Source: Camelus dromedarius (lineage: Eukaryota). Taken from it: a DNA stretch of 64,000 nt. The notes beneath the pieces are model-generated. The model did not search any database and was not told the origin of the DNA. It saw only the letters and a list, made by a program, of their open reading frames with translations. The stretch spans positions 434,001 through 498,000 of the forward strand of contig NC_087462.1 of the NCBI RefSeq assembly GCF_036321535.1. Reading direction: 5' to 3'. Positions 3,230 through 55,500 of the stretch are shown here, one piece after another. The position numbers and the translations under genes are program-made. Every line of letters starts with the position of its first letter. The stretch's first letter is position 1.

Positions 3230-5336
3230 ATGACCCAGAGCTGCAGACCCTCCAGCCCTGCCCTCGCCTCCGTCCTGCTGGCCATGCTGCTGGGCGGTGA
3301 GTGGGGCCCGTGCCTGTCCCTGGGCATCCATTCCTGCCTCCCCACTTGCCCTGGACCCTTCTTGGCCCCCTCATCCTCCTGGGGAGTGACAGCTGGGAGA
3401 GGAGGAGACTGAGGGTCTGAGTGGTGAGGTCTGAACAGGGGCAGTCACTGGGCACTCTTCAGGGCCTCCAAGAGAGTGAAGTCCAGATCCAGCTGCACCC
3501 TGGCAGCGGGACCGCTCAGGCCCCCTCTCCACCCAGTGGGTTCCCAGTGGGGGTTCAGGGCCAGCTGGCCCAGGGCAGGGTTTCCCTGCGCCACTCACTG
3601 CCCGCACGGCACTTGTCCTCAGGCCCCGCGCTGGCCTCAGAGATAGTGGGGGGCCAGCCCGCCCGGCCGCATGCGTGGCCATTCATGGTGTCCCTGCAGC
3701 GGCGTGGAGGCCACTTCTGTGGTGCCACTCTGATCTCACGGAACTTCGTCCTGTCAGCGGCACACTGCCTGAACGGCCTGTGAGTGTCCCCCGCGTCCCC
3801 ACCCTGTTTCCAGCCCGCCCACCATGCGTGGGGCCAGGATGGCACTGCCACCTCCCTCCTGAGCCCGGGGTTGGGGGATCTTCCGGCACAGGCATGAGGG
3901 TCTGCAGGTCCTGCTGCTCCCGGTGGGGGGGGGGGGGTCTCTCTACCGATCCCCACCCCAGGGTGCCCCAATCACCTCCTGTCCCCCCTATCAGAAACTT
4001 CCGGTTGGTGCGCGTGGTGTTGGGGGCCCATAACCTGGGGCGGCGTGAGCTCACCCGGCAGACGTTCAGGGTCCGGCGGGTCTTTGAAAACGGCTTTGAC
4101 CCCCTGAGCCTGCAGAACGACATCGTGGTTCTCCAGGTGCGCGGCAGCTGGGGGCAGCCATGGCAGGTGCAAAGGCGCAGGGGGAGGCTTGCGGAGGGCA
4201 GGGAAGGGGCAAGGGGCTGGGGGACATGTTGGGGGCAGACCTGGTGTCTCCCCGCCGTCTCTCTGTGCCTCAGTCTCTCCCTCCGTAAAACCAGGAAGTA
4301 ACCCCCGCCCCTCTGCAGGGCTGTTGAGAGATCAGAGATGACAGCAGGGAAGCTCGGAGCAGCTGTCGATCAACACACCACTGTGATTTTGTGTGCCCGC
4401 TGGCCAAGGGCAGGGACAGTCTCCGTCTCTGTGAAATGCGGCAAAATCCCCCACATTTGGTGGGCGGGAGACTGGAGGGAGCGACCTGCCCTCCCGCCGC
4501 TGCACCTGCTGTTTACTGCACCCGAGACACGTCCAGGGCCACCCAGAGACATAGTGGCCGCTCCCACCTTACAGATGGGGAAACCGAGGCCCAGGGTGGG
4601 GAGCATCTTGCAGGGTGGGCGCCCCTCTCTGCAGTATCTCAGGACGATGATGGAACTTCAGGCAGGGAAACCGGGGCCTAGAGAGGCAAGGGCTGCCGCT
4701 CACCGCCCCCCCGTGACGTGCCACTGCCGTCTCCCCCACTGCAGCTCAATGGGGCGGCCACCCTCAACGCCAACGTGCAGGTGGCCCAGCTGCCTGCCCA
4801 GGACCAAGGCGTGGGCGACGGGGTGCAGTGCCTGGCCATGGGATGGGGCCAGCTAGGCACGGACCAGCCGGCAGCTCGAGTCCTGCAGCAGCTCAACGTG
4901 ACCGTGGTGACGGCCCTCTGCCGCCCTGCCAACGTGTGCACCCTGGTGCCACGCCGGCGAGCTGGCATCTGCTTTGTAGGTACCCTGTGTCCCCCCAACC
5001 CCTACCCCATCCCCACCCAGGCTGCAGAAACCAGGACTGCAGCCAGACCCCTGGAAAGACATCCCCATCCTGAAGGGCAGTGTGTGGGGCTGTGAGGGCA
5101 GGGCTTCCCAAACTTGTCTGACTCCGCAGGGGGACTCCGGCGGGCCCCTGGTCTGCAACGGGCTGGTCCAGGGGATCGACTCCTTCATTCGGGGGGGCTG
5201 CGCCTCTGGGCTCTTCCCAGACTCCTTTGCCTCCGTCGCCACGTTCGCAGACTGGATCAACTCCATCATCCGCCGCTATGGGGGCAGTGACCACCCCCCT
5301 CTCCACCCCAGGAACCCCGTGGGCAGAACCCCCTAG
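3230..5336 (+). CDS. ELANE: Neutrophil elastase, 267 aa, 5 exons
   Basis: Exons 3230-3296, 3623-3779, 3995-4136, 4745-4975, 5130-5336 (67+157+142+231+207=804 nt), all GT-AG and in frame. Signal peptide, SE-IVGG activation site, [12 protein letters not shown], and triad motifs AAHC / NDI / GDSGGP are present. Confidence 0.97.
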
Positions 5337-7761: not shown

Positions 7762-9884
7762 ATGGCGGGCCGCTCGCTGCACCTGGCGGCTCTGATCCTC
7801 CTGGGAGTGGCTGTATGCGGTGAGTGGACCTGGGCCTGGTGTGACAGCTGTGGGGGCCACTGGCCTGCAGGGCAGTCAGCCAGAGGGACCCCTTCCATCG
7901 AACACAACTGTCCTCCAGCCCCACTGAGTAGGCAGAGAGGTGGCGGTGTCCACGTGAACACAAGGCTCTGAAAACCAAGGAATTCTCAAAATTTTGACCC
8001 TAGCTTTTTGCGCACAGTGAGACTAACTCTACAGTGGAAAACCTGCAGCCCAAGGGGCAGCTGTCTGGTGGGGCTGTGAGTTTGGTCAGTCCCGTTTTTC
8101 TTATGTTTCAGTTGGAGCCGTTAGGCCGGACGTGTAGGTATGGAATTTGCCCCAGACTCTGTCCCTCACTGCCACCTGTCTTCTTGGGCATTCCTCCCTG
8201 GGCCCCTGGAGTTTGCAACTCTGGGAGGATTCCAAGGCTGGCATTTCAGTTCTGAGGGGTGCTGGAGCTGCCCGGGGGTATAGGGGGAATCTGAGGGCTG
8301 GGCTGCCATCACCCCTGGAGGCCTCACGCAGACCTGCCTGCCTCCAGCAGCACAGCCCCAAGGCCGGATCCTGGGCGGCAGAGAGGCCAAGTCCCACGCG
8401 CGGCCCTACATGGCCTCGGTGCAGGTGAACGGCAAGCACGTGTGCGGAGGCTTCCTCGCCGCCCAGCAGTGGGTGCTGAGCGCCGCGCACTGCCTGGAGG
8501 ACGTGTGAGTGGCCTGGGGCAAAGTTCCCGAAGGGGCTTTTGGTGGGGCCAGGACGTGGCTCTGATGCGGGCCCACCGCACTCCCAGGGCCGACGGGAAG
8601 CTGCAGGTGCTCCTGGGCGCGCACTCCCTGTCGCAGCCGGAGCCCACCAAGCGCCTGTACGACGTGCTCCGCGCAGTGCCCCACCCGGACAGCCGACCTG
8701 ACACCATCGACCACGACCTCCTCTTGCTGCAGGTCTGCTAAGTCTCTCCGCAGTCCCCACTCCTGCACTCGGGCCCCCGCCCCCGCCCCCGCCCCACCCT
8801 AATGCCGGCTTCCGCCCCGTCCCCCAGCTCTCTGAGAAGGCCGTGCTGGGCCCCGCCGTGCAGCCCCTGCCCTGGCAGCGCGAGGACCGAGACGTGGCGG
8901 CCGGCACACTCTGCGATGTGGCCGGCTGGGGCGTGGTCAGCTACACGGGCCGCCGGCCCGACCGCCTGCAGCACTTGCTCCTGCCGGTGATGGACCGCGC
9001 CACCTGCAACCTGCGCACGTACCATGACGGCACCATCACCCAGCGCATGATGTGCGCGGAGAGCAACCGCCGGGACACCTGCAAGGTGTGCGGCGGGGCG
9101 GGGCCGAGCGGGGGAGGGGGGTGATGGAGCGTGTGGCCAGGCGAAGGGATGGGACACAGAAGGGGCTGGCCCGCGGATGGGCGGGGACGACAGAAAGGCA
9201 GGGCGGGAGGCGGGGCTTAGCGCGTGGGCGGAGTTTGCACTGACCAGGATGGATCCAGGAGTGGGCGTGGCCCGAGACAGGTGTCGGGGCCCCAGATGGG
9301 AGGGTCAATCACGGGACAGGCTGGGTGAGCGTGTCTGGCCCGACGTCAAGATAGGGCTGGGAGGAGAGGTGGGATCTGGAAGAGGGTATGTACGAGGCGG
9401 GGCCTGGGCTTGGAGAGGGCGGGGAGTGGGGGCAGGGTCGGAGGAGGAGGCGGATGGCTGAGCCTGGGACAGGTCCGGGACAGAGAGGGGCGGAGCCAAA
9501 ATTCGGGGAGACGGGGCCTTAGTGGGTAGAGCCCGCAGCAGTGAGCAAGGCCCTGGGAGACTGAAGCAACTCCTGGCAGCTCCAGCTGGGAGCAGGTTGC
9601 GGCCAGAGGGACAAGCGGGAATGCAGCGGGCGCCGGTGGAGCTCACCCGACACGGGAGGGCGGGCCGGACGCCTGCGGCCGGGCCTGCACCAGACCTCAC
9701 GACCCCACCCCACCCCACGCAGGGCGACTCGGGAGGCCCGCTGGTGTGCGGGGGCGTGGCCGAAGGTGTGGTCACCTCAGGCTCCCGAGTCTGCGGCAAC
9801 CGCAAGAAGCCCGGCATCTACACGCGTTTGGCTAGCTATGCAGCCTGGATCGACGGCGTGATGGCTGAGGGAGCAGCCGCCTAA
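7762..9884 (+). CDS. CFD: Complement factor D (adipsin), 259 aa, 5 exons
   Basis: Exons 7762-7819, 8348-8504, 8588-8732, 8828-9085, 9723-9884 (58+157+145+258+162=780 nt). GR-ILGG activation site, AAHC, DHDLLLL, GDSGGP and the factor-D-specific self-inhibitory loop [11 protein letters not shown] are present. Confidence 0.97.
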
Positions 9885-13930: not shown

Positions 13931-15000
13931 TTTTGCAAAGGAAACCATAAACCATAAAGAGACAATCTACAAATGGGAGAAAATATTTGCAAATGATGCC
14001 ACTGACAAGGCATTAATTTCCAAAATATACAAGCAGCTCGTACAACTGAAAAACAAAAAAACAAACAATCTCATCAAAAGATGGGCAGAAAACCTAGACA
14101 GACATTTCTCCAGAGACAGCCAGCCAGCCAGCCAATAAGCACATGAAAAGATGCTCAGTATTGCTAATTATCAGAGAAACGCAAATCAGAACCACGGTGA
14201 GGTGTCAAGTCACACCTGTCAGAAAAGCCATCATCAAAAAGTCCACAAATAATAAGTACTGGAGAGGGTGTGGAGAAAGGGGAACCCTCTGACACTGCTG
14301 GCGGGAATGCAGTTTGGTGCAGCCACTAAGGAAAACAGTATGGAGATTCCTTAGAAAACTAAAAGCAGATGCACCATGTGGCCCAGCAGTCCCACTCCTG
14401 GGTGTACAACTGGAGAGCACTCTAACGCGAAACGACACCTGCACCCCGAGGTCCACAGCNNNNNNNNNNNNNNNNNNNNNNNNNNNNNNNNNNNNNNNNN
14501 NNNNNNNNNNNNNNNNNNNNNNNNNNNNNNNNNNNNNNNNNNNNNNNNNNNNNNNNNNNNNNNNNNNNNNNNNNNNNNNNNNNNNNNNNNNNNNNNNNNN
14601 NNNNNNNNNNNNNNNNNNNNNNNNNNNNNNTGAAGTCACACGGAGAAAGACAAGAATCACAGGGTATCACTCACATACAGAATCTGAAATACGACACAAA
14701 TAAACTTATTGACAAAACAGAGAAACGGACTCACAGACAGAGAAGGCAAACTTAGGGTTACCAAAGGGGAAAAGAGTGGGGAGAGGCAAATTAGGAGTCT
14801 GGGGTTAGCAGATACAAACGACTGCATATAAAATAGATAAACAAGGACCCACTGTACAGCACAGGGAACTAGACTCATTAACTTGTAATAAACTATAACA
14901 AAAGAGAACCTGAAAAAGTATATGCAGAGCTGACTCACTTTGCTGTGCACCAGAGACAACGCTGTAAATCAACTACACTTCAATAAAATGAAAATAAAAA
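13931..15000 (+). mobile_element. 5'-truncated LINE-1 (degenerate ORF2 C-terminus plus 3'UTR), containing a 171-nt N-run
   Basis: gcaaaggaaaccataaac...aaatgggagaaaatatttgcaaatgat (ORF2 end); cetartiodactyl-type 3'UTR ...ctgtaaatcaactacacttcAATAAAatgaaaataaaaa; N at 14460-14630. Confidence 0.9.
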
Positions 15001-15062: not shown

Positions 15063-18000
15063 TCAGGGACAGCTGAGGGGCACTCGCCGCCACAGCCCCC
15101 CACACAGGCAGTTCTTGATCCAGCGCTGCTCCCACTGTTTGACAGCCGTCGTCTTGTTGGGTGACTTGAGCATGGTGACGCAGCCACACCTGCAGGCAGA
15201 GCCGGCGGTGGGGTGCTGGGCGGGGCTGGGCCCCCACCTGCGCAGGGCCTTTTTTGCCCATGCTCTGCTGGCCCAGGAACGCCGTTCCCTGCACGCCCCC
15301 AGCCTATGACGAGCGGACTCCTCTGCGTCCTTCCGTCCCAGCTCAGACATCGATCCCCACCTTCCTGAGTGGTGGAGGAGGGCCGGGGGTCTCAGCCAGC
15401 CCCTAGTGGTGCGACCCGGGGTGGTCTGCAGCAACACAGGCAGTGTCTGAGAAGCGCAGCACTGCTGCGGTCACTCCTTCATTTCTGTCCTGGTCAGGTG
15501 ACTGGGAGCGCCACCGGGGCAGGCTCGGACGAAGCACTCACAATCAGCGCCCTGGGACAGGACACTCGGGGAGGCTGCCGGAGACCCCTGCTCGCAGGTT
15601 CCACTTGGAACCCGAGGCCCCAAGCGGCCAGAGGCAGCACAGAGGGCGGGGCCGGCGGGCGCTCACCTGGTGCACGCCTTGCACTCCTCCGTGGGATGGG
15701 CGCCCAGGTGCAGCCTCCGCAGGTGGTCCGTCTTGGGGTGGCCCGGCGCCCTGGCAGGGACAGCAGCGCGTGAGGGGCTGCTGCACCCATGTGCATGCAC
15801 CCACACCACGTGCACCCGCCCGCCAGTGCAGATCCGCAGCCTAGAAGCAAAGCGGGCGTGACGTGCACACTTGGGGAAGGAGGGGGGGACGTCCACCAGT
15901 GGGGCTCCCACACACAGACGCCCCCACTGGAGGGCCCGCACCCCCACAACAGCTGAGAACCTGGGCCGAGCCCCGTCAGAGGGAACGCGGGGCTGGGGCG
16001 GGCCCGCTTGTTTTACCGGTGCGGAACGTTTGAAAACCTCTGAAAGAGTGTGAAACCCCTTGAGTGACCAGCCACCTCTTCTTGTAAGGTTTTCCTAAAG
16101 CCCAGACGCAAACCACAGCGTGTGATTCCTCAGGCCATTCCTCCCACCACGAGACAAGAAAGAAAATGTGGAGGTCTCGTGGAACAAGGCCCAGAGCGGC
16201 TTCCAGGAGCAGGGGCTGCAAGGTGCTAAGGCCCCGCCCCTAGTGACACTGCCTGGGGAATTCATCGCTTGAGCACTGTAAACAGGAGGCAGTCTGCAGG
16301 GTCCTGGGATCGTGGCCGGCTTCCTGACTGCAGCCCTCAGGTTCAGTTTACTTGCCTATAAAAAGGGGACAAACACCCACCCCACAGCATGGCTGGGCAG
16401 TAAAGGGTTAACTTGGCAGGCGTGGCATGGCCTGTCCAGGACCCACACATTCCAAAGAAAGGTTCCTCTAAAACCTTGGAAGGTCCTGCCTAGGGACTGT
16501 TCTGCCTCCCCGGGGCCTTGGGCCCTGCCAGGCAGTCTGTGCTGCAGTGTAATTTCTGGTGGAGGGCTTGGGGTATCAGCTTGAACTCTGGAGGGGTTGG
16601 AGCCTGAGCAGCCAAGGTCAGCCACATGGCTCCTGCGTATATGTGGGGACAGACCAGAGGAAGGATGACAACACCCAGAGAGACGAGGGCGTAAGTCAGT
16701 GTAGGCTGAGGTAACTGGATGAGGGAAGTGACAGGCAGGGGAGAGGGACTCGGAGGTAGCGGAATTCTCCGGAACAGCATTTAGGTCAGGCTGGAAGGAT
16801 GCAGACGGCACAGCACGTGCAAAGGCCCTGAGACAGAGGTGTGAAGGAGATCAGGCTGGTTTTGGGAAGACTCTGCCAGAAGGAAGGGCCGTGCCAAGGG
16901 CCGGAGGCAGAAACGGGTACGCACCTGATGAGGCCGTCCAGCTGCAAGGTGGTCGCGCTGCCAGGCAGAGCAGGAGTCTTGCCGAAGTGCAGACGCAGGG
17001 GCTGCTTGGGCTGCAGGCGGCTGACCAGGCCGTCGCTGACTGGCAGCCAGTCCAGGGTGGGGATGAGCAGCTGGCTGGGCAGCAGGCAGCACTCATCAAC
17101 GAGCGCCTCGTCCGGCTCGCTCGTTGGGCCCTCGTCACGGCCTGCAGGGAGGGGACCACGGGCGTGTCACTCTCCACAGCCCTGCCGGGAGCACTGCCCA
17201 CCCAGGAGGCACCCTGGCCTCCTCAGCTCACAAAACACCAAGTGCAGGCCCCAGCCCTTCCCTGATTTCCTGGGTGGCCCTGGAAGGCTCCTTCCCCCTT
17301 TGGCCTCAGCCTTCTCCTCTGTAAAATGGGGACCCACTTACTCATTTAAAAAATACGCAGCGAAGTAGGGGAGGCTATAGCTCAGTGGTAGAGCGCCTGC
17401 TTAGCATGCACGAGGTCCTGGGTTCAACCCCTGGCACCTCCATCAGAATAAATAAGTAATTACATAAAACCTAATTACCTCCCCCCAAAACAAAACAAAA
17501 CGAAACTGAAAAAAGACAAAAAAATACGCAGCGAGCACTGGGTGCCCTTTCTGGCATCAGAGATGCGACAGCAACAGAGTCTGGCTCCAGAAACACACAC
17601 CTGGTGACCCAAGACACATGTGCGTTAAGAATGGCTGAGTTTCATGAGCACTCACACTGTGCCTGGACCTGTGCTGGGGAAACAGTGGAGGCCAAGACAA
17701 CAATTTGACCTGTGGGAGCTTATATTCTGGTGGAGGGACTCAGTCAGGGCTTGTATTTCGATGGAGGAATGAGAGCAGAAGGCCGTGTGTCTTACAGCAG
17801 ATCCAGAGCTTGGTGAGCAGGCGGAAGAGCAGGGACATGCTGTCCTGGGTGTCTGAGGTGGCCGTGTACACAGGCAGGCAGCTGGGCTTCAGCAGGCCCC
17901 AGATGCGGATGACGACCATCAGCTCACGCAGCATGCCCAGCGAGGTGCCGTCCCGCAGGAAGCTGTGGCCTGGCCGCAGTGGGGAGCCCTACGGGGAGAG

Positions 18001-27000: not shown

Positions 27001-27876
27001 GGATGAGCACTGCCCCCTCCCTCGGCCCCGCCGGACCCCCAGCCCCACCCTCACCTGACTGGTCCCACTCGAGGCAGGTGATGGCTTCACTGTGCTCAGA
27101 GTTGATGGAGTGCACGTCCCAGGGGTGCTCCGTGTCCAGGATGTGGATCATGCGGGTCAGGTCTGCGAGGGATTGGGTGGTCAACAGGGCAACCACAGCA
27201 CAGCCGGCAGTGACCCCAGGGGTGACGAGGGAGAAGCCCAGCAAAGCCCCAGCTCCAGTGAGTGCGGAGCTGCTGCTGACACGCCCACGGCCCAGGGCTT
27301 TCCAGGAACAGGCTGGGTCTCCTCCCTGAGCAGGCCCAAGACTCTGCCACCTGTGTGCCTACACCTGTGATTGAAAGGACGAGAAAACCCGAAACACTAA
27401 TGTTGGGCATCTCTCCGTGGGAGGGAACCTCTGGTTCGTTTTCCTCATCCTAAACTTCTCTGTTTTTCCAATTTCCTCTAACAAGCGCAGGCCTGGTGCA
27501 CCTCAAAGGCTTTCAAAAGCCTGGAAAACTCAGGCATGAGCCTCAGGCCAAGCTGTAGGGAACCACCCACCCATCACCCCGTCACATTCTGCAGGGGTGA
27601 CCCAAGGGTCCCCTGGCTCCAGGCATGGGAGAGCACACTCGGCCCTTCACCCCTCATCACCCCTGCCACCGATGAGGAGATGCTGGAAACCTGTAGGAGC
27701 TGGGGCCTGATGACATGGGATGGGGGCCGGGCGAGGGGCGCACCCTGGTCGTCGCTGCGGAGGTCTGTGGTGAAGGCGATGAGGTTGCGGCAGGACCAGG
27801 CGCAGGCCAGGGGCACCGACGGGCAGTGGGTGCTCTTGGGCCATTTCTCCCACTCGCAGACATAAGCCAGGTCCAT
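15063..27876 (-). CDS. MED16: Mediator of RNA polymerase II transcription subunit 16, 829 aa, 14 coding exons
   Basis: Coding exons (minus strand): 27876-27744, 27162-27055, 26792-26623, 24857-24426, 23760-23655, 21695-21540, 20909-20698, 19886-19680, 18986-18776, 18312-18179, 17988-17796, 17141-16925, 15750-15667, 15189-15063. Total 2490 nt, phases consistent, all GT-AG. The protein runs [12 protein letters not shown]... to ...[19 protein letters not shown]. Confidence 0.97.
17364..17518 (+). mobile_element. tRNA-Ala-derived SINE with perfect 16-bp target-site duplication
   Basis: TSD aaaaaatacgcagcga at 17348-17363 and 17519-17534, preceded by TTT (TTT/AAAA L1 endonuclease site). It has a tRNA-Ala(AGC)-like head and an A-rich tail. 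Confidence 0.92.
23990..24360 (+). mobile_element. MLT1D-like MaLR LTR in MED16 intron
   Basis: ...gtcctcacagggtcatcatcagaggtaggcgggagggtcagagtcagagagag...ctctagaagctggaagaggcaggag...ttctccctggagcctct is characteristic MLT1 sequence. Confidence 0.6.
25500..25975 (+). mobile_element. Old L1 (L1MB/MC-type) 3' end with A/GAAA tail
   Basis: tccatggacgtgaaacgtccagaacagg...gatgaaaatggtctgaaact...ggttgcac...ccactgaattgtgtacttta...catatctcaac followed by poly(A) and (GAAA)n. Confidence 0.7.
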
Positions 27877-29368
27877 TGTGCCCACCCGCCAAGCTCACAC
27901 ACGGAGGGCGACCACCAGTTCCTGAAGGAGGGAAGGCTGGCTTGTCATGGACGTTCAGGCAGGGTGTGCAGGACCCCGAGTACAGTGCTGGGCGCTGGGT
28001 CGCCAAAGGGAAACAAGTGGACTCAATCCCTGCCCTCGTGTGTGGCGGGGGAGCTGCATTTTACACACTCATGGCCAAGGAGGCCTCCGCAGTGTAGGTG
28101 CGAGGGATAGAGGTGTGCAGCCTGGAGGAAGAGCATTCCAGGCGGAGGGAACTGCCAGTGCTAAAGGCCCAGAGGCTGGACCGAGCCTGGGGTGCTGAAG
28201 GAGTGGTCAGGCTGTGTAGCTGAACAGAGTGAGTGTAGGAGAGGAGTAAAGTGAGGGTGGGGAGGGGAGGAGGCAGATCGTGCAGGGCCTGGGGGGTTCA
28301 CCCAGAAGGGCTGAGACCTGTTTCTGTTTCAGCAGACCCCTCTGGCTGTCTGGAGGGCGAGGCTGGGAGACAAGTGGTCTAGGTGAACAACGATGGGGCA
28401 GAGGAAGCGGTGAGAAGAGGCACAACCCAAGGTCCGTCCTTAAAGAGGAGCCCACGGATACCCAAGAGCACCAGTGGGGCTGCCTTTGGCAGAGGCAGGG
28501 CGGCAGGGAGGCAGGGCGGGGGCAGGCAGAAGCTTGGTGCGGGACTTCCGAAGGTAACAGTGATAGCGGAAACACTGGCCTTTCCTCGGCGCTATGTGCC
28601 CGGCATCGATTAAGGCTATTCCCTTTCACCGTTACCAAAGCTCAGGGAGGCCGAAAAGTACCATCAACCCATTTTTCTCAATCACCGACCCCGGGTGCCA
28701 CGCTTCTTCAAGACCCGACCACAAGGTCCCTTCCACAGTCTTTAAGCTCTGCCCCTAAGCCTCCCGGGCCCCTACCCCTACTGTATCTGCTTTCCAGACT
28801 CCACTCCCAGTTTGCCCCGTGTCCCCGGTCCCAGCCTAAACTCCCGTTTCCACCTCAGGATCTCCCCAACAATCCCAAGGCCCTGCCCCCATACGGCTGG
28901 TCCTCCAGGCGCTGCCTCCAATTCGCCCTGTGAGACCCCCCAGGCTCCATCCCAGGGACCCCTCACCTAATACCTAGTTCCTGGCCCCCAGTTCCGGTCC
29001 CCAAGCCCCCCCGTAGTTCTCAAGCCCCAACCCCAGCACAACGCCCAGGCCCCTCCCCAGGGAGGTACGTCAGGCCCCGCCCCCGTTCGCGTTCCAGGCC
29101 CCGCCCCGACTCCCCCTGCTCCAGGTCCCCCGGACCCTCGGGGCGCCTCAGGTTTCACCCCGAGGTTCCTCCTCGACCCACCCCCACAGACCCCACCCAG
29201 AGCGCTCAGGCCGCGTACCCAGCTCCCCTTGCTCTCCAGGCCCGCCCTCTGACCCCACAGGCCCCGCCCCGGGCCCGCGAGTCGCCGCTTTTCCCGCTGC
29301 GCGCTCCCCGTGGCACCAGGTGCCGTCCGGAGGCCGGCAGGCCGCCCGAGCCCCAGCCCAGCGCCCAC

Positions 29369-29460
29369 CGAACTGGCCGGTGCGCCCAGACGAGCGGGCG
29401 GGGGCCTGCACGCGCCCTAACGCTCCGGCTCGGGCGCCGCCATCTTCCCCGCACCAACGA
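29369..29460 (-). other. MED16: Probable non-coding exon 1 of MED16 in a CpG island
   Basis: CpG island at about 29050-29560. Minus-strand donor CAGTTCG|gtgggc at 29369 joins the acceptor ccttcag|G at 27921. A YY1-type motif AAGATGGCGGC is present. The TSS is approximate. Confidence 0.55.
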
Positions 29461-29482
29461 GTCGCCCGCGCAGCGCGGCCGC

Positions 29483-29740
29483 TTCCCGGAGACTTCTGGG
29501 ATGGCAGCGGCTCCGGTCCCGCCCCGCTTCCGGGGTAATTTGCATACATTGATGGCGTTCCAGCAGACATCTGAGGTATACTTGGTGAAAAACAAAGACT
29601 TTCTCAATTTCAGTGAATGACCCGCACTTGGTTAAGCTATTATTGCACTAATGTCATAAAGTAAGAGGTAAGTTGTTGAACTTTTTTTTAACGGAGGTCG
29701 CCCTTTGTGAAAAGCAGTCCATTTTGTGCACTCTAAATAG
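29483..29740 (+). promoter_or_regulatory. RNA polymerase III type-3 (U6-class) promoter: SPH/ZNF143-like, octamer, PSE, TATA
   Basis: ZNF143-like (minus strand) gctgccatcccagaagtc at 29491-29508; ATTTGCAT at 29538-29545; PSE-like TCGCCCTTTGTGAAAAGC at 29698-29715; TAAATA at 29734-29739. With +1 near 29764 these fall at about -226, -66 and -30. Confidence 0.8.
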
Positions 29741-29763
29741 CCCTCGNNNNNNNNNNNNNNNNN

Positions 29764-29870
29764 NNNNNNNNNNNNNNNNNNNNNNNNNNNNNNNNNNNNN
29801 NNNNNNNNNNNNNNNNNNNNNNNNNNNNNNNNNNNNNNNNNNNNNNNNNNNNNNNNNNNNNNNNNNNNNN
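29764..29870 (+). ncRNA. RNU6: Inferred U6 snRNA gene hidden in the N-run 29747-29882 (coding sequence not visible)
   Basis: The promoter architecture points into a 136-nt N-run long enough for a roughly 107-nt U6 plus terminator. I recall human RNU6-9 lying head-to-head with MED16 at this position. Coordinates are extrapolated from PSE/TATA spacing. Confidence 0.62.
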
Positions 29871-30133
29871 NNNNNNNNNNNNCATCCGTGGATGGAGAAA
29901 CTGGGCTCGGTAAGCGAGAACCAATCCAGGGCCCGTGTGGATGCCACCCCGTCCCGTCTGCAAACCCCGATGGCCTGGGAGCCCGGCTGCGGGTCCGCGT
30001 AGGGGAGCACAGGCAGCCTGTGGGCGCTCCGGGCACCAGAAGTTGGGTCCTCGTTACCCGTGAGAGCCTCCAAGCTGGGGCATTTGGATTTCCCTCATTC
30101 GGCATCTGTGTTGAAAACTACAATGTCTGTTAA

Positions 30134-30265
30134 GGAGGGGAGGATGCAGCACAGCGGGGGAGCGCGGCTTCGCATGTTAGGTCCGGGGTTCAATCCCCAG
30201 CTCCTCCGTTAAACTAAAGATGGATAAATCTAAATTCCACTACCCCGCCCCCCGCCAAAAATAAC
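30134..30265 (+). mobile_element. Diverged tRNA-derived SINE with 14-bp TSD
   Basis: TSD acaatgtctgttaa at 30120-30133 and 30266-30279. B box ggggttcaatccccag is present. Confidence 0.85.
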
Positions 30266-30529
30266 ACAATGTCTGTTAAAATGGAACAGCACCCAGATAG
30301 ATCTTGGTTTCTAAACGGTGCCCGGGTGAAAGGAAGCAGGCTCCTTGGCTGGTTCTCGGTCACTCGGAGCAGGTATAGAGGTAAATCTCTCCTGCAGAAT
30401 TTTCAACCTTCAGGGACAAGGTCAGCCTTGTGAAGAGCCCTGTGGACAGCAGAGACCCCTGCTGTGGCCGGGGGAGGGCAGTTCCCTCGGTGCCATCACG
30501 AGAGAAACAGCAGATGACCCAGGCTGCGG

Positions 30530-30787
30530 AGTCCTGCAGGACACACAGCCAGGCCCAGACACACAGATGGAGGCACAGGGAAGAGGCCACATGAAGATGT
30601 TGGCTGGAGGGAGGCGGCCACAAGCCAACAAGGCCGGAGCCTCCAGGAGCTGGAAGAGGCAGGAGGGACCCTCCCTTGATACCTTGACCTCAGACCTCTG
30701 GCCTCCAGAATTGCGCGACAATAAATTCCTGTGGTTTTAAGCCGCAGTGTGGTGCACTTTGTTCCAGCGACCCAGAAAGCTCACACG
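30530..30787 (+). mobile_element. MLT1 (MaLR) LTR
   Basis: gaagaggccacatgaagatg...ggccacaagccaa...ggagctggaagaggcaggag...gacctcagacctctggcctccagaattg...aataaattcctgtggttttaagcc. Confidence 0.75.
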
Positions 30788-31036
30788 AATGAACTTGCTG
30801 GAGGTCACACAGCTGAGAAGTGGTGGAGTTGGAGTTTGAGCCTCTGCACTCCGGAGGGGACAAGCCAGGCGGCGGAGCCAAGGGCCGGGATGCTCCCAGC
30901 AGAGTCCCCACACACCTGCCTCCATGTGGGGTGTCATCCCTCAACGACCAGGACCCAAGGGCATCGTGAATGCCCCTCACGCCTCCAGCCCTGCCCCAAA
31001 GGAAAACTCCAGAGCTGGGGATTAGAGCACCAGAAG

Positions 31037-31042
31037 TTTATT
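31037..31042 (-). terminator. R3HDM4 poly(A) signal
   Basis: TTTATT on + (AATAAA on -), about 820 nt downstream of the stop codon. Confidence 0.7.
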
Positions 31043-31861
31043 GAACTCTCCACTTTCCCAAAGCACAACAAGCCACACACGCGGGGGCAGGGTGGGTCAG
31101 GGGGACAGTCTCCCAGCCCCACTCTCATGTGCCACGCCAGGGTGACCAGCACAGGGACACCCCAGAGCCAGGCTGGGGAGCAGGGGACACAGAGAGGGGA
31201 ACAGGACAGTCTGAGGGTGGAGGCTTCTGGCTGGAAGTCCCAAACCCCTAGTAGGAAGGAGGGGGTGTGTAGAGCAGATGGGGCCCCAAGAGCCACCAAA
31301 GGGCACCAGGGGCGGACAACACACAGTCCACAAAGAGGGTAAAACCAGCCTTCAAGACACAGCCTCTGTCCTGGGTTGCAGGGCACACACATGCACACGC
31401 ACACACGCGCAAAACGTAATGTTCCTGGGGTGAGGGTCAGGGCCCCAGAGACCCCCACGCAGGGACTGGAATGAAGCCCCCCAATTTATCACTTGGGGCA
31501 AGTTTTTGGCTTTTCTTCTGAAAAGGGAAATTTAAAAATCTACAACAAATCACATCAAATTCATTAAAAATGATAAAAACCCAGCCTTTGCCTCCTCCCC
31601 TCAGCATCTGACACTGACCGAGGAAGGGACACGGGAGCGACCAGGCCAGGGGTCCCCGCCCCAGACAGCGTCCCAGAGCGGGCAGTCTGGCCAGAGGGCA
31701 CGAAGCAGCCCCCACCGCCAGCCTTTGTCTGGGCAGGGAGGGGCCGCCCCAAGGGGAAGAGCATGTTTCCAAGGGAGGAGCCTAAAACGATCGAGCTGCG
31801 TCAGGGGAGGGCAGCAGAGGGCGTGGGGAGGGGTTGGCGGGCGGGCACCGCGGGGCCGCCA

Positions 31862-41684: not shown

Positions 41685-42045
41685 AGGGGAGGGATAAATT
41701 AGGAGTTTGAGATGAACAGGTACACGCTACTTTTTTATGAAGTAGATAAACAACAAGGACCTCCTGTGCCTCACAGGGGACTATGTTCAGTACCTTTTTT
41801 TGCAGGGGGGTCATTAGGTTTAGTTATTTATTTGGTTTTTCAGTGGAGGTACCGGGGATTGAACCCAGGATCTCACGCATGCATGTGCTCTACCACTTGA
41901 GCTATACCCTCCCCCCCTACATTCAGTGTCCTTTAATAACCTATAATAGAAAAGAATATATGTATGTATAACTGAATCACTTTGCTGTACACCTGAAACT
42001 AACACAACATTGTAAATCAACTATCCTTCAATTTTTAAAAAATTA
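41685..42045 (+). mobile_element. L1 3'-end fragment interrupted by a SINE
   Basis: gataaattaggagtttgagatgaacag...acaacaaggacctcctg... resumes as ...gaatcactttgctgtacacctgaaactaacacaacattgtaaatcaacta. It is the same 3'UTR type as 14760-15000. Confidence 0.8.
41795..41914 (-). mobile_element. tRNA-Ala-derived SINE nested antisense in the L1 fragment
   Basis: Reverse complement reads ggggagggtatagctcaagtggtagagcacatgcatgcgtgagatcctgggttcaatccccggtacctcca. Confidence 0.85.
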
Positions 42046-51399: not shown

Positions 51400-52500
51400 C
51401 CGAGCCCAGGAGGTCCATACTAGGTGCTCAGTAAGATGGCGAAGGGGTCTCCGACCAGGCTCGGATCCCCTAAGACCTTCCACGCGGAGGCCCAATCTCT
51501 TCCCCTCCCCCAGCCCAGGTCGCTCCCAACCCCGCCCGCACCCTAGGCGCCCTGTGCGCTCCCGGCCACGGCGCGCACTTTGCCCACCGTCCCTAGATAG
51601 GGGGCGGGGCATTCCGCGTCCCGGTTCCCCTTCCCTTTTATTATTTATTATCCTTTAAAGGGGCCGCGACCTGAAAATTTCCGTCCACTCTCTCCCCCTC
51701 CCCAACACCCCTGAGCTAGTCGTGCATCGTCGGACTGAACTCCGGGGGCGAGGGGGCGTCCGGGAAGGGGGAGGGGGCCTCGCGAGACCCCTCCCCGCAT
51801 CCTGGGCCGCGGTGCTGAATCACCGGCGAGGTATTTGCATCTGAGAGCGATTTGTCACCCGGTGATTTGTCTGCGGGGCGGTGAGCGCGCCGGTCGGGGG
51901 GGGGAGGGGAGGGGCGGGGGAGGCCGCGCGCGGGGAGACTTTTACCAATCGGGTCCGTGGGGGGTGTAGACGCGGACTCGGCCGGCGTCTTGGTGAGTCG
52001 GCGCGCGGCACAAACCCGGCGGTGGCCGGGAGCCAGTAGCGCGCAGCTTGCGGCCCGGGCCGGAGGCCAGGCGCGGCCGGGGCAGGGCCGGACGCCAGGC
52101 GTGGGGCATGCGCCCCACGAGCGGGCCCTGCGCCCCCCGAGCGGGCCCTGCGCGGTGAGGCTGGGGCGAGGGGTGGGCCGGCCTTTCAAATCGCGGGTTC
52201 TGTCCCGGGTGGGTGCCGTGCGCCCTGGAAGCCAATGAGGGGGTGTCCCCAAAGTTGGTCAGGGACGTGGGTGGGGGTCCAGGGCCGGGAAGGCGGTCCC
52301 AGTGGGTCAGAGTTGGGGTGTTTTTCTCTGCGTCCCCCTTGAAGACCTCACCCCCTACCAGATTGCACCCAGGCGGGTCCGGGGGTGATCGGGGGTCGCG
52401 AGTGCGCGCCCCCACCCTCCAGCGGAAGGAAATGGTCTCTATGCGCGCGCGGGGGGCTAAGCTCTGGGTTATTTCATTTTTTTCCTCCCTGAAATTAGAT
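51400..52500 (+). promoter_or_regulatory. ARID3A: ARID3A CpG island promoter and probable non-coding exon 1 (donor at 51992)
   Basis: CpG island, CCAAT at 51945, donor TTG|gtgagt at 51992/51993, and downstream acceptor ccccag|G at 55380. Confidence 0.6.
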
Positions 52501-55500
52501 GTTTCATTTGGGATCCCCAAGGGGAGTGGGAGCGCCGGGTGGGGAGGGCAGTTCCGTGGCGACCCTCCCCAGCTTGGATGGTTTATTTATAAAGTGTCGG
52601 TTCTGGGGCAGAAAGGGGCCCCTGGAGGGAACACCATCGTGACTCCGTCCCGGGGTGGGCTCGGCCTGAGCCCTGGCTCTCTGGTGAGGATCCTCGGGAA
52701 AAGGCCCCCCTGTCCCGTTCAGTGCCCCCCAGACACAAAAGCGGGCGCAGGAAGCGCGGGGAGCGCGCGTTGGTCAATTCCAACGTTCGGCGGACCTGGG
52801 CGGCCGGTTTGTCAATAATCTTCCGTTTTTAGTGGCCCGGCCTGGAGGGTTTGCCCCCCCACCATGCAAATCTGCCGCTTTCCAAGAAGCCTTTGAAATC
52901 GGACTGGGGTTTCTGTCTTCTTATTTCTTCTCTTCTTAAGTGTTTCTTTTCTCACTTCCTCCAGACCGCCCCCGCTGGACTCTGCTAGCCCCCTCCCCAG
53001 GTTTCTGCCCCGCCCTCCCCCTTCTCTTCCTTTGGTGGAGTGAGGGCCCCCTTTCGCCACCCGCGGGCCCCAGCCTTGCACAACTCTTTAAATAACCGTG
53101 TTTTGCAAGCCCTGGGCTGAGCGGGTGACCTCTCTCTCCCCGGGAGGCATTGGGGGGGAGGGTGTGGCCCCAGATTCCTCCCCGCCCCTCCAGCCAGGTC
53201 CCAACGACCACCCAGCACCCCCATCCCCCCTAGTCCCTGCCAGGGGTTGCCTCTCCCCTGGGGTTGTCATAAAGTGGGGGTAGGGCCGAGGACAAAGGGC
53301 TCCTGGGGGGAGGGGTCTGGAGGGGGGCGGGCGTCACCCGCTTAGGGTTAATGGCGGCCATGGGGGGTCCTGCCCGGGCCCAGGGGGCTCTAGGGTTCCC
53401 ACCTGCCCCCTCCACCAGCCCCAGCGTGGAGGCCTGCCCTGCTCCCCTCCCCCACCGTGGACCCGGAAGGGTCATTAAACCCAGCAGGCCTGGGGAGGGG
53501 GATGGCGTGGGGGGAGTGGCTTCCTCTGGCCTCTTCCTTCTGCCCCCCAAAGAGGGGGGCGTTGCCCAGAGCGTTTCCGTGGGGAGGGGGGACTCATCTT
53601 GAAGTTGTCAAAGGTGGGGGAGGGGCGGCAGACCAGACTAGACACTGGGTGAGAAATGTCCCCTCAGCACTTCTTGGGGCTGGGGCTGGGGCTGGGGGTG
53701 ACCGCCTGCCCCTGGGGGGTGGGGGCTGGGTGCTATTCTGCTGCTTCTAAGGACAGGCTAGCCTGGTCACTCTCCAGCGCTGTGGCCTCGGAGAGGGCCT
53801 TTGTGCCCTGGGACCCCTGCCCCTGTTGGATCCTGAGGCCCTCCCAGGACAGGTCCCTGCCCACTTTCCCACAGGGGCCGCTCACCTGCATCCCCCACCG
53901 TCCTTTCACCCATCCTGCTGGAAGCCCCAAGGACTGGGGAAAGGGCCCCTCCTGTGACTGGGAAGGCTGGAAGGGTCTCCCCAGGGTGGGGTCAGGCTTC
54001 TTTCTCTTAGCAGGTCAGGGGAGGGGTTGGGAGGGTGGCCAGGCTGGTCAGTGTCAGCCAGCTACCAGGAGCCTCTAGCAGCCAGCACCCACTGTGTCAG
54101 CCCCTTCCTGTGTGTGGGCCCCCTGTGCTCCAGGAGCTGTTCAAGATCCTTAGGGGATTCATTTGCTGGGTTAGGGGTGGCTTCTGGACTCCCCTGCTGC
54201 CCCCACTGTCCCAGTGATGTACCATCTGGGGTGTCACTGCCAGACCTGTTGGGTTCTGCCTGGTCTGTTTTATTGGCGGCCTGGGCGGCTGGAGGTGTGG
54301 CCTGGGCTTGGGTGGGGGGCCGGGACAGGACCTGCGTCATCCTCCTGTCCTTTGTTGTGCCCCGCTGTGCCAGGCTCTGGGATGTCCATGCCCAGAGCCC
54401 ACCCGAGGCCTTGGCAGCAAGGGTTGGCTGGGGTCCAAGGGGACCCTAGGCTAGGGGCAGAGTGCATTGCATTCTGGGACATCGGCCTCACCTGGGGTCC
54501 CAAAGGGCAGGGGAACTCCCTGCAGAGAGCACGTGGGGGCTGTGTGGGAGGCTCTGATGTCACCCAGCCCTGGGTTCGAATCCCAGCCCTGCCCGGAACC
54601 TGCTGTGTGTCCTCCAGGGGGTCCCCTCCCAGCCTGCTTTCCTCGTCGGTGAACCAGGGGCCATCTGTCCCTCCTTCCTCAACACCAGTGTGGTGCTTGC
54701 TGTGCCCGCCCCTCCCCCCGTCTGTGCCATCATAGACTCGCTTCATCCTGCTTGGGCACAGGGAGGTGGGCGCGCCTTTTAGGGCACCACTGTGCCGATG
54801 GGGAAACTGAGGTCTAGCGAAGTTGAGGTTTAGGGATGGGATGAGAGCCTGAGTGGGGGCTGCAGCTCAGAGCCCATAAACAGCAAGTGCGTCTCGGGCA
54901 GCCAGCGTGCCTGTGAGAAAGGAAGGTGCCTGGCACTCCCCGGACCGGGCTGCACCCAGCACGGCCACGAGCAGCACCCAGAACTCAGAACCAGAACCCA
55001 GAATGCACCTGGACTCTGGTCCCTGGTAGCCAATCAGAGGCCAGAAGCGCCCTGTTCCCCTGCTCTGTTTATGAAACCATAATCCAAGTCTTCCTCCACG
55101 ACTGTGTGTTTCTGTGTGGCCCAGACTGGTGGGCTCCCTCTCAAGACCCTCAGGAGCCCAGAGTGGGGTGACCCCACTTCCCAGGCCACTGGAGGGTGGA
55201 CAGAGAGGGGGCGGATGGGGAGAGCATGCTCCTCCACCTCCAGGGGAGGCCTCCGGGTTTGCACCCTGGTGGACATGGATGGAAGGGATTTTCCAAGAGG
55301 CTTTGGGGGTCTGACTTCAGTGGGGAGGATGGGGCTGAGGAGCCCAGGGGTGGTCTGACGGTCTCTCTTGTCCCCCCAGGTTTCTGCAAACACGTGAATG
55401 AGCCACACACCAGCCGCTGCCCCTGGGTGCCCTGTGTGAGGAGGCAGTGCCCGCCTGCCGCTGGCATGCCCCGCCACCCCTCAGCCTGAGTCCGGCGGCC

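Follow-up and report, generated by a model that had tools for sequence, protein, structure and literature searches.

The window analyzed here is a stretch of 64,000 nucleotides of dromedary DNA in which a run of N's lies between MED16 and an R3HDM4-like gene. The genes and gene-related features of the window, assigned from Pfam matches, open reading frames (ORFs), base composition, and short motifs, are the following.

4980-5333 and 8284-8505, + strand: trypsin-family exons (Pfam), the second of which resembles complement factor D (CFD-like)
~16.8-27.9 kb, - strand: MED16 exons (Pfam Med16_N, E 2.6e-31, and Med16_bridge)
27577-27894, - strand: exon bearing the MED16 ATG, with the start codon at ~27876
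29000-29530, - strand: CpG island (GC 0.76, CpG observed/expected ~0.85-1.02), presumed to hold the MED16 promoter and a non-coding first exon
31037, - strand: AATAAA motif, likely 3′ end of the R3HDM4-like gene
33.7-35.4 kb, - strand: R3HDM4-like gene, R3H-assoc exons (Pfam)
42.6-45.7 kb, + strand: 7tm_1 receptor (Pfam), KISS1R-like
from 55637, + strand: start of an ARID3A-like gene (ORF)

The genes are collinear across the gap, in the order CFD-like, MED16 (- strand), gap, R3HDM4-like (- strand), KISS1R-like, and ARID3A-like. The CpG island was searched for a coding first exon of MED16, and none was found, the ATG being located in the next exon; thus, exon 1 of MED16 is probably non-coding. 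A YY1-like sequence, AAGATGGCGGC, is present in the island at 29436-29446 (- strand), approximately 100 bp from the octamer described below. The short ATG-led ORF at this site (MAAPEPER followed by a stop) was considered as the MED16 start and rejected, since the true start lies in the next exon. Three tRNA-like matches of 38 to 41 bits are located at 2579-2651, 17370-17442, and 41844-41911, one of them in a MED16 intron; two of the three were called tRNA-Ala(AGC) by ARAGORN. These matches are probably not tRNA genes but SINE heads of tRNA origin.

Between the CpG island, which ends 8 nt before the octamer, and the N-run, the + strand carries a set of motifs that point into the N's. The motifs, the gap, and its right flank are given below, with positions relative to the predicted transcription start (+1) where applicable.

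29527-29533, + strand: ETS/GABP core CTTCCGG (motif scan), 4 nt 5′ of the octamer, a possible partner in the distal element
29538-29545, + strand: exact octamer ATTTGCAT, the Oct-1/POU2F1 site and distal sequence element (DSE), ~-226
29546-29697, + strand: spacer of 152 bp between the octamer and the PSE, about the size of one nucleosome, which it may accommodate
29698-29716, + strand: PSE TCGCCCTTTGTGAAAAGCA, a putative SNAPc site, ~-66 to -48
29734-29739, + strand: TATA-like box TAAATA(G), ~-30 to -25, 17 nt 3′ of the PSE
29747-29882, no strand: run of 136 N's, unread or masked, covering predicted positions -17 to +119
29764-29870, + strand: predicted U6 snRNA body of 107 nt, wholly under the N's, placed from the promoter geometry and the length of U6
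29883-29916, + strand: right flank, with a donor-like CG/GTAAGC whose junction is at 29909/29910, 27 nt past the gap

The original prediction had located an octamer at 29538, a PSE-like element at 29698, TAAATA at 29734, and 136 N's starting 7 nt farther on, and every one of these elements was recovered at the position given, the PSE-like element as TCGCCCTTTGTGAAAAGC(A). The seven letters that separate TAAATA from the first N are GCCCTCG. In genes with this promoter architecture, the octamer of the DSE usually lies ~200 to 240 bp 5′ of the start, often together with a ZNF143/Staf (SPH) site that is frequent but non-obligatory. Placing +1 at ~29764, as had been proposed, gives -226 for the octamer, -66/-48 for the PSE, and -30/-25 for the TATA-like box; the arithmetic is correct, all three spacings are satisfied at once, and the start is uncertain by ~2 nt. 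[quoted passage not shown] The PSE consensus, TCACCNTNA(G/C)NNNAA(A/T)(G/A)N, is found 40 to 70 bp 5′ of the start (PMC5493778), and a competent PSE-TATA spacing is 15 to 18 nt (PMC11696126). The camel PSE departs from this consensus at 2 of its 12 specified positions and from the strict 19-mer by 3 mismatches. GABP binding is also known at SNAPc promoters (PMC3499247), although any function of the CTTCCGG core here is a conjecture from the motif.

Of four sequence features sought for the type-3 class, the PSE, the TATA box, and the octamer were found, and the one lacking is the Staf site, which is not obligatory. A search near the octamer with the published Staf consensus at up to 3 mismatches returned no site. 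The best candidates there carry 4 to 5 mismatches, a level that the window reaches 204 to 810 times and, hence, one that represents chance; of the distal element originally implied ("SPH+OCT"), only the octamer is therefore supported. The best Staf/ZNF143 match of the entire window is TGTCCCAGAATGCAATGCA (2 mismatches) at 54463-54481 on the - strand, ~1.2 kb upstream of the start codon (55637) of the ARID3A-like gene. A 19-nt motif whose function is unknown has been reported upstream of type-3 genes (PMC3499247). As a marker it was uninformative in this window (113 matches compared with 73 expected) because it is too degenerate for a window this rich in GC. A run of eight T's on the + strand (29682-29689), 9 nt 5′ of the PSE, would halt Pol III read-through from upstream.

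To estimate how often such a promoter would arise by chance, each motif was evaluated separately and in combination. Exact octamers occur 4 times in the window (0.72 expected), the strict PSE 19-mer at 3 mismatches occurs twice (0.70 expected), and the looser published PSE consensus at 2 mismatches occurs 21 times (16.8 expected). The PSE match by itself is thus no better than chance, and it is significant only within the composite. Among 2,000 random 64-kb sequences with the dinucleotide statistics of the window, a PSE with a TATA-like hexamer at the right spacing appeared at a rate of 0.001 (strict) to 0.0125 (loose) per sequence, and the same pair accompanied by an octamer 120 to 200 nt upstream appeared in 0/2,000. 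A local null model was also built from the AT-rich block that contains the motifs (29530-29746); although biased toward them, it gave a probability of ≤2.5e-6 for all three. In the real window, exactly one such composite exists on either strand, namely, the set at 29538-29739. Two of the other exact octamers, at 51833-51840 (+) and 52864-52871 (-), are situated ~1 kb apart in GC-rich sequence upstream of the ARID3A-like gene; neither is accompanied by a PSE or a TATA box.

The three-motif composite is far beyond chance, and this result bears on the view that the motifs are a promoter relic or a fortuitous cluster, with the gap reflecting an assembly failure or the masking of unrelated sequence and no functional small-RNA gene being present. 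The imperfect PSE, which lacks significance when considered alone, and the missing Staf site speak for such a relic, and the only other N-run of the window falls in an L1 repeat, so that N's need not mark genes. In contrast, the composite is improbable even under the local base composition, a neutral relic would not retain an exact octamer together with exact spacings, and the position is syntenic with that of a known active human U6 gene. We therefore consider a relic or a chance cluster unlikely. The data support a complete promoter in which octamer, PSE, and TATA box are spaced as in type-3 Pol III genes, located on the + strand and aimed into the N-run.

The gap and its flanks constrain the length of any transcript. 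With +1 at 29764, 119 N's remain, which accommodates an RNA of 107 nt with 12 nt to spare, as the original prediction had held for U6. Neither a T-run nor an snRNA 3′ box is present in the right flank (29883-29916), and after the gap the + strand has no stretch of at least four T's until 30400, 518 nt beyond it (none in 29883-30399). The terminator of a Pol III transcript, if there is one, would therefore have to be inside the gap, which fits a U6 RNA of 107 nt. If the stated gap length is right, the RNA cannot exceed ~119 nt, a limit that admits U6 and excludes 7SK, RMRP, and RPPH1, although the figure of 136 may be an estimate only, which weakens the size argument. The sequences 600 nt before and 600 nt after the gap share only chance 8- to 12-mers, with no overlap or duplication. 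No ORF of any length runs into the gap from either side, and stops are encountered within 6 to 112 nt to its left in all six frames; 136 is not a multiple of three, and the reading frame is not at issue. Rfam was run over the entire window and, with permissive E-values, over 28500-31200; no fragment of U6 or another snRNA was found in the flanks. This silence is expected if the RNA lies wholly under the N's, and it argues neither for nor against the gene.

A weak mascRNA-like Rfam match at 30156-30207 is accounted for by a short tRNA-derived SINE at ~30134-30265 (noted region, 30120-30279), which has a B-box-like core, GGTTCAATCCCC, and on either side a perfect target-site duplication of 14 nt, ACAATGTCTGTTAA. 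The second N-run of the window (14460-14630, 171 N's) is within the 3′ portion of a + strand L1, so that both N-runs of the window fall on sequence that is either repeated or highly conserved. A second L1 copy covering 14460-14630, which would have served to calibrate the length of that N-run, was sought in the window and was not found.

The right flank also raises the question of whether the TATA-like box could belong to a Pol II promoter, with the N's hiding the 5′ portion of a first exon that ends at 29909/29910 and belongs to a divergent transcript, probably a non-coding one. The donor-like GTAAGC 27 nt past the gap and the adjoining CpG island, which looks bidirectional, are consistent with such an exon, and some Pol II can be recruited at type-3 promoters (PMC3499247, PMC11696126). 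However, a single GTAAG within 30 nt is weak evidence of a splice donor, the gap is not adjoined by an ORF on either side, and a PSE 17 nt before the TATA-like box combined with an octamer at -226 is a type-3 signature that is improbable by chance. A hidden Pol II exon is thus quite unlikely, and the type-3 promoter is retained as the preferred reading.

The promoter does not by itself specify which RNA it drives, because its elements are common to all type-3 genes (PMC3499247, PMC11696126). The RNA is hidden from view, and other species of ~80 to 119 nt would fit the gap as well; U6atac, a Y RNA, a vault RNA, tRNA-Sec, or an undescribed RNA could in principle be transcribed from a true type-3 promoter at this position in place of U6. 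Several observations weigh against these candidates. A U6atac RNA of 125 nt would overrun 29882 into a flank devoid of a T-run, and 7SK, RMRP, and RPPH1 (265 to 340 nt) are too long, provided that the gap length is right. None of the genes for U6atac, Y RNA, vault RNA, or tRNA-Sec is known to be located between human MED16 and R3HDM4. The conserved gene order at this locus points instead to RNU6-9. We accordingly regard a type-3 RNA other than U6 as very unlikely, and we assign an extremely low probability to a variant U6, or an undescribed type-3 small RNA, under the N's with a control region of ~300 bp shared with MED16.

A U6 snRNA gene under the N-run is the reading best matched by position. 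The human order at 19p13.3 is CFD, MED16, R3HDM4, KISS1R, and ARID3A, with RNU6-9 presumably located between MED16 and R3HDM4, ~270 bp from the MED16 start. The camel gap occupies the place that corresponds to this presumed human position, having MED16 head-to-head on its left and the 3′ end of the R3HDM4-like gene on its right. The active human U6 genes number five and include U6-9; the U6 RNA has a length of 107 nt, and a protein-coding start site that is transcriptionally active, for which MED16 is not named, has been reported close to U6-9 (PMC2082468). Our literature search found no paper naming RNU6-9 together with MED16, R3HDM4, or 19p13.3, and it yielded nothing useful on camelid U6 promoters. 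Taking the promoter and the gene order together, we consider it likely that the 136 N's conceal a U6 snRNA gene that is the camel orthologue of human RNU6-9 and is arranged head-to-head with MED16. The original prediction of a hidden U6 gene is thus partly supported: its type-3 promoter, its strand, and its RNU6-9-like position are upheld, its SPH element is not, and the RNA body is a prediction from the promoter geometry. The original suggestion that the N's stem from multi-copy U6 reads that failed to assemble is doubtful, since such a run may equally be a deliberate mask. The description of the gene as invisible to annotation therefore applies to the present copy of the sequence and is not a biological finding.

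Transcription of the predicted gene can be envisaged as follows. Oct-1 would bind the octamer at -226, perhaps aided by an ETS factor on the adjoining CTTCCGG, and a nucleosome over the 152-bp spacer would place Oct-1 beside SNAPc bound to the PSE at -66/-48. Through SNAPc, Brf2-TBP-Bdp1 would in turn assemble on the TATA-like box, which lies 17 nt downstream of the PSE. Pol III would be expected to start ~25 to 30 nt beyond that box, near 29764, and to stop at a T-run within the gap after ~107 nt.

The predicted camel gene resembles known systems to different degrees. Human RNU6-9 belongs to the same promoter class (octamer DSE, PSE, and TATA), a protein-coding start site is nearby in both species, and the camel gene order matches the order at human 19p13.3. 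However, the camel RNA body is unread and a Staf site was not detected; the two genes are likened here by promoter class and position. RNU6-2 and RNU6-1, the model U6 genes, share with the camel locus a PSE-TATA distance within 15 to 18 nt, a TATA box of the TAAA(A)TAG type (the TATA oligonucleotide of human U6-2 is CTTAAAATAGG; PMC11696126), and a DSE ~220 bp upstream. They are located at other loci, and whereas these models possess an octamer and a ZNF143 site, the camel octamer is accompanied by an ETS core alone. Head-to-head Pol III/Pol II gene pairs of the RPPH1-PARP2 type are alike in that a type-3 Pol III gene lies within a few hundred base pairs of the CpG-island promoter of a divergent Pol II gene; they involve another RNA and another partner gene, and shared use of the control region is putative in the camel pair.

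Nothing at this locus is new in kind, since the gene class, the promoter, and the locus are all already known. The biological weight of the finding is correspondingly small: octamer-PSE-TATA U6 genes are textbook material, and a human U6 gene is known at the site. Its value is practical: where N's conceal a gene, an intact external promoter and a conserved gene order allow the gene to be inferred with good confidence. The present copy of the camel sequence is also flagged as lacking what is probably a true U6 gene, of which there are few. The idea that U6 transcription depends on nearby Pol II is not new (PMC2082468), and the head-to-head arrangement of MED16 and U6 would be a natural case of this reported dependence.
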